Below, in pieces: positions 29,422 to 34,418 of a DNA stretch of 64,000 nt. How positions within the stretch are numbered: position 1 is the stretch's first letter; the number at the start of each line of letters is the position of its first letter. This stretch comes from Phaeosaccion multiseriatum (Eukaryota; Protista; Ochrophyta, other classes): contig OZ218956.1 in the NCBI GenBank assembly GCA_965112735.1, positions 682,001 to 746,000 of the forward strand. The letters are read 5' to 3'. Both the position numbers and the translations under genes were made by a program. Below the pieces are notes generated by a model, which was given only the letters and a program-made list of their open reading frames with translations, was not told where the DNA came from and did not search any database.

Positions 29422-29716
29422 TGCTGCACGCAATGGCAGCGAGTCAGAAGACGCGAAAAAGCGCCAAGGAAGTTCCAAAACTGCCTCCCTGATGCCTTCT
29501 TCGAGACAAGAGGCCCACCTACTCAGTCGAGCCGATGTACAGCGATAGAAGCTGTAAAGAAGCGAGCATCTCGTCTTGCAGAAAGAAAAAGGGGTTCCGC
29601 GAAACCGGAGCCAGCTGTGAGTGAGCCCCTGGATCACCAACCCTTACACCTTATACCCCCTCTCTCACTTCTTGTGCTTCTCGATCCAAGCAGTTGTGGG
29701 TGATGACTTAAGCTCC

Positions 29717-30844
29717 ATGCGGTCGTCATGGTGGGCGAAACTCGCCGTGTATCTGCTGACGGGAGCAGCCCTGGTTATGATGGCTTCGTTCCTGCGGGTG
29801 ACGAGGATAAATGGGTCCGAAAGGCCAACTGGCGACATGACGCTTACCGCGCGGCTGTTTGGCTGGACCAAGCTTGTGCGATGCCAGTATGTGTGCGAGG
29901 ATTTGTCTTCGTATACGGCAGAGGTGTGGAGTCGACAAGATGTGCGAGAGAGGTATGACGCCGAATTATGGCGGCGAAGAGAGAGAAAGTCTTCGCGCCG
30001 GAGCCTGTTGGCAATCACCACTTGCAACCAGTGGCACATTACAGAGACATTGCTGCGTCACTTGGTGGATAGCTATGACAATGCGGGGGTAGAGAGAAGC
30101 TTCGATGTGGTGGTGATTGACGACAACAGCGAAGATGGCACGCCTGCAAGAGTGGCAGACTCGTTCGGGCCAGACACTTTCTATGTGGTGACTAAGGAGA
30201 AGCCCCGCGGCCTGACGCACAGCTGGAATGTGGCGTACCAAATCTTCAAGGGGGAGGGCTACGAGAACTTCTTCCTCGTGAACAATGACCTCATCATTCC
30301 GCGGGGAGCCCTGGAGCGCATGGCGGAGGCTCTCGAGACTGACTCGCGCATCGACGAGCTGGGCCCGCTGTACCACGAACAGGGGCTGGGCGCGGGGGCC
30401 AAGGCAAAGAACTACCCATACCAAAACGTTGCTGTCACCAGGCCGGACAGTGGTGCTGAGAAGCTCCTGGACGACTTGCCGCTGAGCGTGGACGAGATTC
30501 AGCGACGGGTGGAGCTGGTGCCAGGGGCGGGGGGGGGGGCGGTTAGCGAGGCGCCCATGGGCATGCTAGGCAGCTTCCTGGGCTTCAATCGACGCATCAT
30601 TGCCAAGGAGATACAGCCACACCACCTGTTCTGCCCCAGCTTGGTCAACCTCGGCCAGGAGGCGGAGATGCGGTGCCGCACGGGCGACAAGGCCATCCAC
30701 GCCTTTGTGAGTCGGGAGGCCTTTGTGTTCCACTCCAAGGGGGGCACTTTGGGCGGCTACGGGCAGGCGGGCAGAAACAGCATCATGGAATGTCACAGCC
30801 CCGCAGCGAACGCCGAGAATGCGCCTCCCGCCGCCGGCGAGTAG
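29717..30844 (+). CDS. Glycosyltransferase family 2-like (GT-A fold), type II membrane, intronless
   Basis: N-terminal TM; VVVIDDNSEDGT; RGLTHSWN; FFLVNNDL; VFHSKGGT. Confidence 0.85.
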   Translation: MRSSWWAKLAVYLLTGAALVMMASFLRVTRINGSERPTGDMTLTARLFGWTKLVRCQYVCEDLSSYTAEVWSRQDVRERYDAELWRRRERKSSRRSLLAITTCNQWHITETLLRHLVDSYDNAGVERSFDVVVIDDNSEDGTPARVADSFGPDTFYVVTKEKPRGLTHSWNVAYQIFKGEGYENFFLVNNDLIIPRGALERMAEALETDSRIDELGPLYHEQGLGAGAKAKNYPYQNVAVTRPDSGAEKLLDDLPLSVDEIQRRVELVPGAGGGAVSEAPMGMLGSFLGFNRRIIAKEIQPHHLFCPSLVNLGQEAEMRCRTGDKAIHAFVSREAFVFHSKGGTLGGYGQAGRNSIMECHSPAANAENAPPAAGE

Positions 30845-30953: not shown

Positions 30954-31142
30954 GCACAGGAAAGCTATGCCATCGATCCTCCATCCGCTCCCCCCATGCA
31001 TCAGCACAGCAAAGCTATGCCATTGATCCTCCATCCGCTCCCCCCATGCATCAGCACAGGGAACGACCGTATTGCGCCCCTCTTCTACTTTTGTGGCACA
31101 GGAAGCCCTTTGCCATCGATCCTCTATCCGTTCCCATGTATC
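30954..31142 (+). repeat. 50-bp tandem repeat (2 near-identical copies + 1 degenerate copy)
   Basis: gcacag(g/c)aaagctatgccat(c/t)gatcctccatccgctccccccatgcatca at 30954 and 31004; diverged copy from ~31095. Confidence 0.85.
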
Positions 31143-31186: not shown

Positions 31187-33151
31187 TCAAGTGTCTTCGT
31201 TGCTGGCTTGCATGACGCTTCCATCGCTTCTGCTGCGGCTGCGGCTGCGGTTCCTCCTGTCAGACTGCTCATTCTCCTCGTCGTGGTCCTCACTCTTCCT
31301 CCCTCTCTCTCTACGGTCGCTGTCCTCCTCCTGCTCAGCCGAGTCCTCCTCCTCCCCCCGATCAGCTTTGCTCCTCCTCCTCCCCTGCTGCTGGCCCTGC
31401 TGGTCCTGCTGAGTCACTGGGTTTACTACTGTGGCAAAGTAGTCGTCAAGAGCCGCCACGGCTCCATCTATATCCTGGTACTCCACAATGTGCCCTCGCC
31501 CGTCCCCCTTGATCTTGCTGGACAGATTCCGCCCGCTGCTCGCGTCGAACAAGCAAAGGGAGCTCTTCTTCCGCCGGCTGGCCCAAAAGCAGAAGTCGTA
31601 ACCGACTTCATGTGAGGGCAAGGTCAAGTCCAGCACCATCAAGTCTGCGGCCTTCATCTTGTCCAGCTGCCCCGACAAACAACGCGCACCAAGAAAACGA
31701 CCACAACATGCGTAAGTGAGATGATGGGAGAGAGGGACAGAGAGTCTATGCACACGCAGCACAGCACACAACACAACGGACCTGCGTACGGCTGTGAGCG
31801 AGCTCCGGGTCTTCTCCCACCGCCCCATGTCTATCCTCTTCTTCTCTGGTCTCGGACGCGTCCCCGTCCTCGTCCTGAGAGCCTCTCCTCCGTCCGTCCT
31901 CGCTTGTCTCACCCTTCACCTTCACCCCCTCGCTTGGCTCTCCATCCACGCTCACCCCCTCGGCTTCAGGAGGGTTCAGCACCTTCCCGTACTCCTTTTC
32001 CTATGTATGAAACACGGCAAGAGAAGCGCCTCAGGTCAGGCCCGTCTTGAGTTGGAACACACACACAGGGACAGGTGAGTACTGTACCTCGATTCGCTCC
32101 GCAATCCTCCGAACAAGCTCGGGGTTGGCGAGGGAGGGAAAGCTCAAGTACACCCGATGTGCCTTCGTGGCGTTCGTCGCAGAGGCGTTCGCGTCCGAGT
32201 AACGAGCGTATTTGCAGCTGGTGATGCGCAGGCTGTCCTGTTGGCGGTCTATTTTGATGACGCCCTTCTCACCGATGGCATGAAGGAGCTCTCCGAAGCG
32301 TGAGTACGCGCTGTGGGCAGGGCAAGAGGTCAGAATGGACCCTCTAAAAGTTGGAAGCTTCTCCCAAGCCATGCCATAGGCTACGCAACGCACCTGTTGG
32401 CCACGCTGTAGTCTCTATTGATACGCTGCATGCGGTCATTGACGATGCTCGCGTTCAGCGGGAAGCGCCGACCTGCCTCGCACACCTCCTAACATGTCCG
32501 TGTTCATCAAGGGCAAAAGGAGGGGGCTTAGCAAGGGGGTGTTCCGCCTCCCTCCTCTTGCGCACCCACGGACCCACCTTTATGGCTTGGATGAAAAGCT
32601 GGTCGACCTCATCCTTTTCCAGAAACTTTCCCCTCATGTGGCGAGCCCCTCCCCCCCGACTGCGCCTACCCGCATCGGTTCTGCTATGGCCGTTGCTGAA
32701 GGACGGTGAGGGGGTGAGGGTGAGGGTGAGAGCTGCAAGAAACTCACGCTCACAAAGTCCATGGACTTACCGATTACTGTCCCCATTCCGAGCACCATTT
32801 CTACCGGCATCCCTGTCCCTGTCTCTGTCCCTGTCCCCTCCTCTATCTCTAAACCCGTCCCTCTCTCTACTGTTCCTGTGGCTCCTCGAGTCTCTAGTGT
32901 CCCTCCCGCCTCGCCGATCTCGACTCTCCCGCCGGCCATCTCGAGACCGGCTTCTCCTGAGGGGGGAAACGGGCCAGCAGCGGCGGCAGGTCAGACACAC
33001 AAGGGTAGGCTTGCTGTTATGGAGGCAATGTCCCTCAACCAACCCACCTCGAGTCCTCCCTTCTCCTCCCGTCTCTCTCCCTCGATCTGCTCCTATGGCG
33101 TGAGTCAGCCCTGGGCCTGCTGCTCCGGTACCGGTCCCCGTCGGGCGCCAT
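31187..33151 (-). CDS. RS/RD-rich + LOTUS(OST-HTH)-like + DNPH1/RCL-like domain protein (7 exons, ~474 aa)
   Basis: Exons 33151-33048, 32956-32771, 32695-32578, 32488-32394, 32310-32088, 32000-31782, 31666-31187 splice in frame with GT-AG. 'AADLMVLDLTLPSHEVGYD...LCLFDASSGRNLSSKIKG...EY...ALDDYF' is DNPH1-like. Confidence 0.78.
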
Positions 33152-33343
33152 GGGGCTACTCGTGTATCGACGGAGGTGTGGGTTTTTCAAGGTTGTGCCC
33201 ATATGCTGATGACATGCTGGTCTGCCTTTGCCCCCCTCCTGAGAGAGAGACCTTGAAAGGAAAGGAGGAAGCCTTTCCAGCTGAGAGAGAAATGACGTGA
33301 GGCCGCGCACCGTGTTGTCTTCCTTTCGCTGCGCTGCTTCTGG

Positions 33344-34418
33344 ATGGGTGTGAGTGTCGATGACCTCACTCCCATGGTGTCTGGCGCGGGGGCTGGGGTG
33401 GTCTGCTCCGTAGTGTGCTCGCCGCTGGATGTGGCCAAAGTGCGAGTCCAGATGCAAGGTGAGAATCTTGCTCTAACGTCTACAGGGAAGTGTTCGTGCT
33501 CTCACGCCCCCTCCCGCTCCCCTACTCTTTTGTCTGCCTCTAGATGCCATTTTCTTCAGGGCGAAGGGAAGCGCCGACAAGAAGTACCGGGGTATTATCC
33601 CCACCCTGCGCACGATCCGGCTGGAGGAAGGGTATCGCGGCTGGTACAAGGGACTCACACCCGCCCTTATTTGCATACCCGTGTTTTGGGGCGTGTACTT
33701 CCAGGTCTATGAGAAGGCCAAGGCCGGCTTCTCGGCCCGGACAGGGCGCGACGAGTTTGTGCTGTCCGCCATCACCGCCGGCCTCATCACGGACTGCGTG
33801 ACGAACCCCTTTTGGGTGGTGCGGACGAGAATGCAGACGGCAGCCATGCACGCCAGTGTAGACGGGACTCAGAAGATGCCGGTCAAGGGCATGTTTCGCA
33901 CTTTTTCCACAATTTTGAAGACCGAAGGTGTGTACGGCTTCTACCGAGGGCTAACTGCCTCCTTTCTCGGCCTGGCGCACGTGGCCATCCAGTTCCCCTT
34001 GTACGAGATGATGAAGAAGAAGGCCCGGGAGAGAAACGAAGATGGGGTGGAGCGGCCGCACCAGCTGGTGCTCGCCTCCGCGCTGAGCAAGCTGGCAGGG
34101 TCGTGCGTCACGTACCCTCACGAGGTGCTGCGCTCGAGGATGCAGGACGACCGCCACCACAAGCCACTAGGGCTCGTGGGCATGGTCAAGCGCATCGTGC
34201 ACAGGGAGGGCGTTGGGGCCTTCTACACGGGCTTCCGCCTCAACATGGTGCGGGTGGTGCCCTCCTGCATGGCCACCTTCCTCAGCTACGAGTTCATCAA
34301 GCGAAAGATGACGAGCTTGGCAGAGGCCAGGAGGCAGCAGGCGACGGCGAACACGGGGGGCCGTGCCGCCAACCACTCTGCGCCTGTCCTCGTCGCGAGG
34401 CAGCAGACAAGAAGCTGA
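33344..34418 (+). CDS. Mitochondrial carrier, NAD+/folate transporter subgroup (NDT1/SLC25A32-like)
   Basis: Three carrier signatures: SPLDVAKVRVQ, NPFWVVRTRMQ (W variant), YPHEVLRSRMQ; also HVAIQFPLYE. One intron. Confidence 0.92.

Follow-up and report, generated by a model that had tools for sequence, protein, structure and literature searches.

What becomes of a nucleotide hydrolase when its catalytic residues are replaced and the gene that holds it keeps its reading frame? The question is raised by a gene on the minus strand (33151-31187) of a stretch of 64,000 nucleotides (nt) from Phaeosaccion multiseriatum (assembly GCA_965112735.1, contig OZ218956.1, positions 682,001-746,000), a stretch called here, in its entirety, the window. 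The product of this gene is predicted to carry charged tails rich in arginine and serine (RS) at both ends, a small middle domain, and a domain derived from the hydrolase DNPH1. The answer that we favour, with moderate confidence, is that it is a nuclear protein associated with nucleic acid or with ribonucleoprotein (RNP), in which the DNPH1 module has turned into a pseudoenzyme, kept as a scaffold or as a ligand pocket.

The gene must, of course, be established before its product is interpreted. Seven predicted exons give one frame of 1425 nt, that is, 474 codons and a stop, with zero internal stops in the spliced reading. They are separated by six introns of 75-115 nt, every one of them GT..AG. 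This is the structure that the first-pass annotation, made from the letters of the window, had drawn (seven in-frame exons, about 474 amino acids (aa), absent from the track of open reading frames (ORFs)), and the structure stands; no single ORF in the mechanical list for the window spans the gene. Its parts, in the order of transcription, are as follows.

33048..33151, minus strand: exon 1, with its ATG at 33151 and a donor GTGGGT after 33048; rich in Arg, Ser and Asp (12 R, 6 S and 5 D per 34 aa).
32771..32956, minus strand: exon 2, rich in RS and RD (22 R, 12 D and 7 S per 61 aa), with 19 dipeptides of the RD/RE type.
32578..32695, minus strand: exon 3, in which the basic tail runs out, followed by middle-domain helix 1, GKFLEKDEVDQLFIQAIK (32578-32631).
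32394..32488, minus strand: exon 4, which encodes the middle-domain strand 1 and helix 2, RFPLNASIVNDRMQRINRDYSVAN.
32202..32310, minus strand: exon 5, first part, which encodes the third helix of the middle domain and its beta hairpin, YSRFGELLHAIGEKGVIKIDRQQDSLRITSCKY.
32088..32201, minus strand: exon 5, second part, a linker and then the candidate strand 1, loop and helix 1 of the DNPH1-like domain, RVYLSFPSLANPELVRRIAERIE; GSIRGG is absent.
31965..32000, minus strand: head of exon 6, EKEYGKVLNPPE, the counterpart of Tribonema DKYGQVLTAHV (strand 2), with the His of TEH replaced.
31782..31964, minus strand: remainder of exon 6, about 50 inserted residues, acidic and rich in Glu, Asp and Gly, ending in ..SRTQ where the family has RD.
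31412..31666, minus strand: first 85 codons of exon 7, which encode the DNPH1 fold's C-terminal half, with PSHEVGYD and LSSKIKG.
31187..31411, minus strand: tail of exon 7, running from Gln-rich through acidic to RS-rich (RNRSRSRSRS), and the stop codon.

Any gene model of this kind invites the suspicion that the locus is decaying or mis-modelled, that function is confined to the winged-helix part or to the last exon, and that the frame is partly fortuitous. Those inclined to that view can point to the N-terminal half of the DNPH1 domain, which has no significant similarity to its relatives, to the predicted status of the junctions, and to the absence of the protein from the protein collections searched. 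They can also point to exon 6, a low-complexity exon with a net charge of -12, whose symmetry (219 nt, phase 0-0) would let it be skipped or trimmed in frame. Such a view must nevertheless explain why six canonical introns hold one frame without a stop, why the GC content at third codon positions (GC3) is 0.72 against an intron GC of 0.53-0.62, as fits coding sequence, and why a single frame in exon 5 runs from the last part of the middle domain into the region that follows. It must further explain four exons colinear with a transcript-derived orthologue from Tribonema, described below. Compared with that orthologue, three junctions are backed by residues or spacing conserved across them (K/EV, AN-S-AY and RIE/EKEYGKVL), and the spacing at the junction of exons 6 and 7 (TQ/LDKM) is the same. 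Finally, a glycosyltransferase ORF and a mitochondrial-carrier-like gene flank the locus closely. Because these neighbours box it in, the locus has no room for two independent transcription units, nor space for separate promoters. Decay or mis-modelling is therefore very improbable in our view, and the seven-exon reading is confirmed as one real, expressed-looking gene.

The orthologue came from a HMMER search with exon 7. It is a protein of 425 residues (P0010) from a transcriptome assembly of the yellow-green alga Tribonema gayanum, where it is represented by one assembled transcript (EP00611 P024514; P0041); its cluster includes KAG5176416.1 of Tribonema minus (UniRef A0A835YJ15, "putative DNPH1"). 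The same search otherwise gave short, ordinary DNPH1-like proteins and repeat-protein artefacts. Among the matches in several stretches, P0001-P0006, P0009, P0040 and others were rejected as artefacts of WD repeats or other repeats. Domain-level tests that need contiguous sequence were run on P0010, and the window model was searched exon by exon. When exon fragments were aligned by MAFFT among many DNPH1 sequences, exons 3 and 5 were misplaced, and an alignment with fewer rows was used instead. A Logan contig of 272 aa (P0055), with a DNPH1 body identical to the human one and an odd N-terminal extension, was judged to be human and set aside, and P0057, P0058, P0061 and P0063, which are DNPH1 entries from primates, were left out of the comparisons.

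The Tribonema proteins have the same part order as the window protein: an RS-rich N-terminal tail, the middle domain, DNPH1, and an RS-rich C-terminal tail. Exons 3, 4, 5 and 7 are colinear with residues 95-112, 123-146, 149-182 and 274-348 of P0010, with 29-61% identity. Identity across the winged helix in exons 3 and 4 is 55-61%, reaching 61% for exon 3 over residues 95-112 and standing at 58% for exon 4 over residues 123-146 (E 6e-9); exon 5 shares the invariant residues Y.RF..L and IT.CKY. In the reverse direction, a search of the Phaeosaccion genome with P0010 found matches in these exons only, exon 4 being the sole place besides exon 7. One phase-0 intron position, directly before (D/E)K.YG.VL, is common to the window gene and the T. 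minus gene; the other intron positions differ. Taken together, these comparisons argue for orthology of the two genes, or at the least for each being the only relative of the other. The T. minus gene (L002:4001-10977) likewise has seven exons, spread over 7 kb, and two transcript isoforms from Tribonema (P0042, P0043) have a different C-terminus that lacks the RS tail.

Here, however, the likeness between the two algae ends. The DNPH1 domain of P0010 is intact (GSIRGG, RD, PSLGVGYE, LSAMIRG), matches rat RCL (2khz) with E 9e-29, and scores 30.4 bits with Pfam PF05014, above the cut-off; it lacks the acidic insert. In the window copy these motifs are lost and the insert is present.

The family is also rare. 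A word search of about 5.8 billion protein clusters, with the middle domain or with the middle domain plus DNPH1, found the middle domain in the Tribonema cluster only. Two metagenome scans with conserved middle-domain peptides gave zero relatives, and an exact look-up of P0010 on contigs returned no record. In the literature, no paper was found that describes this family or links DNPH1 to LOTUS, to winged-helix fusions or to pseudoenzymes. The family is annotated only as hypothetical or putative DNPH1 and is undescribed, as is its degenerate member here. The first-pass annotation had called the fusion novel-looking. This does not hold as stated, since public databases already contain, for Tribonema, a protein of this layout whose DNPH1 is intact.

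What, then, remains of the hydrolase? By its sequence matches, the last exon is solidly the C-terminal half of a DNPH1-family domain. Its first 85 codons match the human and rat DNPH1/RCL structures 9i3q, 4p5e and 4fyh (E ~8e-7; chain residues 65-141), and give 68.5 bits against a locally built canonical DNPH1-like profile (profile positions 67-151). When a canonical profile of 19 sequences was run against the whole 67-Mb genome, exon 7 was the sole match (66.7 bits, E 6e-17). No second DNPH1 gene was found in this genome with exon 7, PF05014, the Tribonema protein or the canonical profile as query. PF05014 gives no match on the single exons of the window, where Pfam returned compositional matches only (for example, CDC45 on the acidic tail).

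The meaning of the residue changes depends on what is known of the human enzyme. In human DNPH1, Glu104 is the nucleophile, the E104Q variant is inactive, and Asp80 is the proposed general acid/base; the 5'-phosphate is contacted by the main chain of Ile29, Arg30 and Gly31 (the GSIRGG loop) and of Gly100, by Ser98, and, from the partner subunit, by Ser128, and the base by His56 and Arg30 (PMC10483697; PMC12751057). In the DNPH1 alignments, PSLGVGYE becomes PSHEVGYD in the window protein, which places Asp at the nucleophile and Glu at Gly100; the Gly and the Glu of this motif are invariant across the 19 canonical sequences aligned. The RD that stands three and four residues before the conserved W becomes TQ, putting Gln, the last codon of exon 6, at the Asp80 position. 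This Gln depends on the predicted junction of exons 6 and 7, and read-through into the intron likewise gives Gln. LSAMIRG becomes LSSKIKG. The His of TEH (human His56) is probably Pro, as aligned by eye. The Ser98 and Ser128 positions are kept. An insert such as the acidic one of about 50 residues after strand 2 is absent from canonical DNPH1. Three claims made from the letters of the window, that the C-terminal part resembles DNPH1/RCL, that GYE has become GYD, and that the catalytic Asp has become Gln, are thus upheld, the first of them for the C-terminal half.

An enzyme can, of course, change its substrate instead of losing its activity. The DNPH1-like domain might still hydrolyse a nucleoside or some other N-glycoside that has no 5'-phosphate, using Asp as its nucleophile and other residues for acid/base catalysis. 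The C-terminal half, the Ser of PS.., the LS.. segment and the candidate Tyr of VYL are all kept, the gene is intact and apparently under constraint, and the nucleoside 2-deoxyribosyltransferases, which belong to the same superfamily, work without a phosphate loop. Such an enzyme would have had to survive the change of both catalytic carboxylates at once, in a family where the Glu is invariant in 19 of 19 canonical sequences, together with changes at Gly100 (to Glu), His56 and Arg30, and with a highly acidic insert of 50 residues adjoining its pocket. We regard this as quite improbable.

The N-terminal half of the domain is harder to read. The DNPH1 profile finds no match in the exon 5 tail or in exon 6, exon 5 matches none of the solved structures, and neither a canonical N-terminal half nor a GSIRGG-like motif was found in any frame between 30800 and 33400. 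When the tail of exon 5 is aligned locally with the N-terminal half of the Tribonema domain, 1921 of 2000 shuffles reach the score; for the head of exon 6 and its Tribonema counterpart, 166 of 2000 do. What can be followed is the order of the parts. RVYLSF...LVRRIAERIE and, across the junction, EKEYGKVL are colinear with Tribonema NVYFCGSIRGGREEASLYKTIIDHVQ and DKYGQVL. Within this stretch, which is without significant similarity, RVYLSF with its candidate active-site Tyr (human Tyr24) is colinear with NVYFCG of P0010, and the loop that follows is three residues shorter than that of Tribonema and contains zero glycines. The first-pass annotation held that the Tyr is kept (VYLS) and that GSIRGG is replaced by FPSLAN. 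The absence of GSIRGG stands; the assignment of the Tyr and of FPSLAN follows from colinearity only, and is reasonable but unproven.

What does the middle domain add to this picture? With moderate confidence, it can be described as a winged helix of about 85 residues. A first AlphaFold run gave this region predicted local distance difference test (pLDDT) values of 37-72, too uncertain for use. In a second predicted model, of moderate confidence, the middle domain of the Tribonema orthologue forms a winged helix, with elements in the order helix-strand-helix-helix-strand-strand, as in LOTUS domains. Foldseek found no match to this model at E<=0.001, and among its best 50 structural matches, mostly DNA-binding winged helices, there were no LOTUS structures.

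The element order nonetheless gives some substance to an earlier reading of the protein, made from the letters of the window. This took the middle domain as a true OST-HTH/LOTUS domain and the protein as an RNA-granule or RNP factor, one whose partner would be either a DEAD-box helicase or RNA such as G-quadruplexes, and whose dead DNPH1 pocket would sense nucleotides or modified bases. When residues 95-185 of P0010 are searched by language-model features, every one of the top named clusters is OST-HTH (score 0.83), and with OST-HTH excluded the search shows no other named family; by the calibration of the tool, this score is a lead only. Pfam OST-HTH (PF12872), which gives two bacterial OST-HTH controls 68 and 78 bits, finds no match in P0010 at E<=10, none in the window exons, and none in a six-frame search of the genome; NCBIfam likewise gives no match on the orthologue.

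Profile comparison falls in between. A comparison profile was built from 24 bona fide OST-HTH domains, all from Bacteroidota genomes and with no eukaryotic LOTUS sequences among them. Against it, hhalign places helix 1 and ..NYGY.KL..L. of the middle domain in the expected register over 58 columns with a score of 15.5 (P 0.035). This score is marginal, being reached by 9 of 300 column shuffles and exceeded by an unrelated control pair, OST-HTH against DNPH1 (16.0). Thus, of the OST-HTH claim, the winged helix survives as a model and LOTUS as a lead. LOTUS is a plausible assignment and the best specific guess for the middle domain, at roughly even chances, although no family profile recognises it.

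The charged tails bear on the same reading. In exons 1 and 2, Arg, Ser, Asp and Glu make up 70-74% of the residues; RS, RD and RE dipeptides are numerous, and the net charge is positive. At the C-terminus, the last 74 residues run from Gln-rich through acidic to RNRSRSRSRS. Their composition and their frame bear out the view that RS/RD-rich tails belong to this one spliced gene. Tails rich in RS are typical of RNP proteins, and weak compositional matches of the orthologue tails to RSRP1 (E 0.004) and SNRNP27K (E 0.0025) fit that association. Pfam found no RNA-recognition motif (RRM) in the exons or in the orthologue. Because it has none, the protein is not a serine/arginine-rich (SR) protein in the strict sense. 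Further, an RNA-granule role is not favoured over a chromatin one, because most of the structures that resemble the winged helix belong to DNA binders. The sensing and granule roles are themselves conjectures. The complete proposal, with a true LOTUS domain, an RNA-granule role and a sensing pocket, is accordingly possible in our judgement, if on the unlikely side.

This returns us to the pseudoenzyme. The ancestral state, as it may still be seen in Tribonema, would have been an active hydrolase of the DNPH1 type (that is, a 5-hydroxymethyl-dUMP N-hydrolase) tethered to a winged helix and to SR-like tails. In this alga, the catalytic machinery has been dismantled: Glu to Asp, Asp to Gln, Gly100 to Glu, the Arg30 loop gone, His56 probably Pro, and the acidic insert of about 50 residues placed in the domain. 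The reading frame has been kept, and with it the winged helix, both tails, and the C-terminal half, including the LS.. segment that reaches across subunits in the DNPH1 dimer. On this reading, the hydrolysis of deoxynucleoside monophosphates is presumably lost, and what remains of DNPH1 may serve as a dimerising scaffold, or perhaps as a ligand pocket that does not cleave. The RS tails would target the protein to the nucleus, where it would work as a factor associated with nucleic acid or RNP. The ligand of its winged helix might be RNA, DNA or protein. The conserved job of the protein would lie, on this proposal, in the winged helix and the charged tails.

Four considerations weigh against this proposal. 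First, the loss of activity is read from residues, and Asp can sometimes replace Glu as a nucleophile. Second, the N-terminal half of the domain may retain its fold despite having lost sequence similarity. Third, the best structural matches of the modelled middle domain are mostly DNA-binding winged helices and not LOTUS domains. Fourth, the exon junctions, and above all the extent of the acidic exon 6, are predictions.

The surroundings of the gene are compact. The single-exon ORF on the plus strand (29621-30844) encodes 407 aa with a family-2 glycosyltransferase domain (PF00535, E 1e-9) and lies tail to tail with our gene. In the 340-nt spacer between this ORF and the stop codon of our gene, positions 30954-31135 hold three copies of a unit of 28-50 nt, two of them adjacent 50-mers that are 96% alike and the third 93 nt beyond; these repeats could be sequence of a 3' untranslated region or of a terminator region. 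On the other side, the mitochondrial-carrier-like gene starts at 33344 on the plus strand and is divergent, head to head with our gene. The roughly 190 nt between the two starts suggest a bidirectional promoter common to both. An upstream in-frame ATG near 33211 would extend the protein by 20 residues; comparison with the Tribonema N-terminus favours the ATG at 33151.

Why might such a protein matter? DNPH1 is known as a stand-alone sanitiser of the nucleotide pool and as a drug target in resistance to PARP inhibitors. Its natural fusion to a winged helix and SR-like tails suggests that the DNPH1 fold can have a context linked to chromatin or RNP. This alga and Tribonema, the one with a degenerate and the other with a catalytically intact copy, form a natural pair for asking what a DNPH1 fold does when it is not an enzyme. 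One might go further, and suppose that in a small family restricted to an ochrophyte lineage DNPH1 is linked to SR-like tails and to a winged helix of the LOTUS type, so tying the clearance or recognition of nucleotides of the 5-hydroxymethyl-dU type to nuclear nucleic-acid or RNP biology. The protein here would then read a nucleotide or modified base without cleaving it, as a pseudoenzyme comparable to Oskar but with another fold. This extension is speculative, and we consider it unlikely. The family looks very narrow, with one cluster in about 5.8 billion and zero in the metagenome scan, and its general reach is accordingly limited.

Each part of the window protein has its likeness among known systems. 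With SR and SR-like proteins such as RSRP1 and SNRNP27K, it shares long tails of Arg-Ser, Arg-Asp and Arg-Glu dipeptides; it differs from SR proteins in having no RRM, its globular parts being a winged helix and a nucleotide-hydrolase fold. With human and rat DNPH1 (RCL; PF05014 fold), it shares the C-terminal half, including the strand-loop ..ADxxVxxxTxPS..VGY.. and the partner-reaching segment LS..I.G. Those proteins, however, stand alone at about 150 residues, whereas in the window version a winged helix and charged tails are joined to the domain, and its nucleophile, general acid, phosphate loop and Gly100 are changed.

DNPH1-like domains with an extra N-terminal domain are also found in bacteria. 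In Marinifilum and Ancylomarina (Bacteroidota; P0045-P0051, L003-L005), proteins of about 320 aa join DUF4269 (PF14091) to an intact DNPH1-like domain, a fusion unrelated to that of the window. These DUF4269 plus Nuc_deoxyrib_tr fusions (for example, Marinifilum P0051) are the next-best matches at fusion length, and differ from the window protein in their partner domain, in having no RS tails, and in keeping their catalytic motifs intact.

For the pairing of the two domains, a parallel is offered by Oskar, in which a LOTUS domain is joined to an inactive SGNH hydrolase (PMC2848206). The two hydrolase folds are unrelated, the sequences share no ancestry, RS tails are absent from Oskar, and the algal domain is only a plausible member of LOTUS. 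The likeness is one of functional analogy: in both, a small winged helix, LOTUS there and LOTUS-like here, is paired with a hydrolase fold that is without its catalytic residues.

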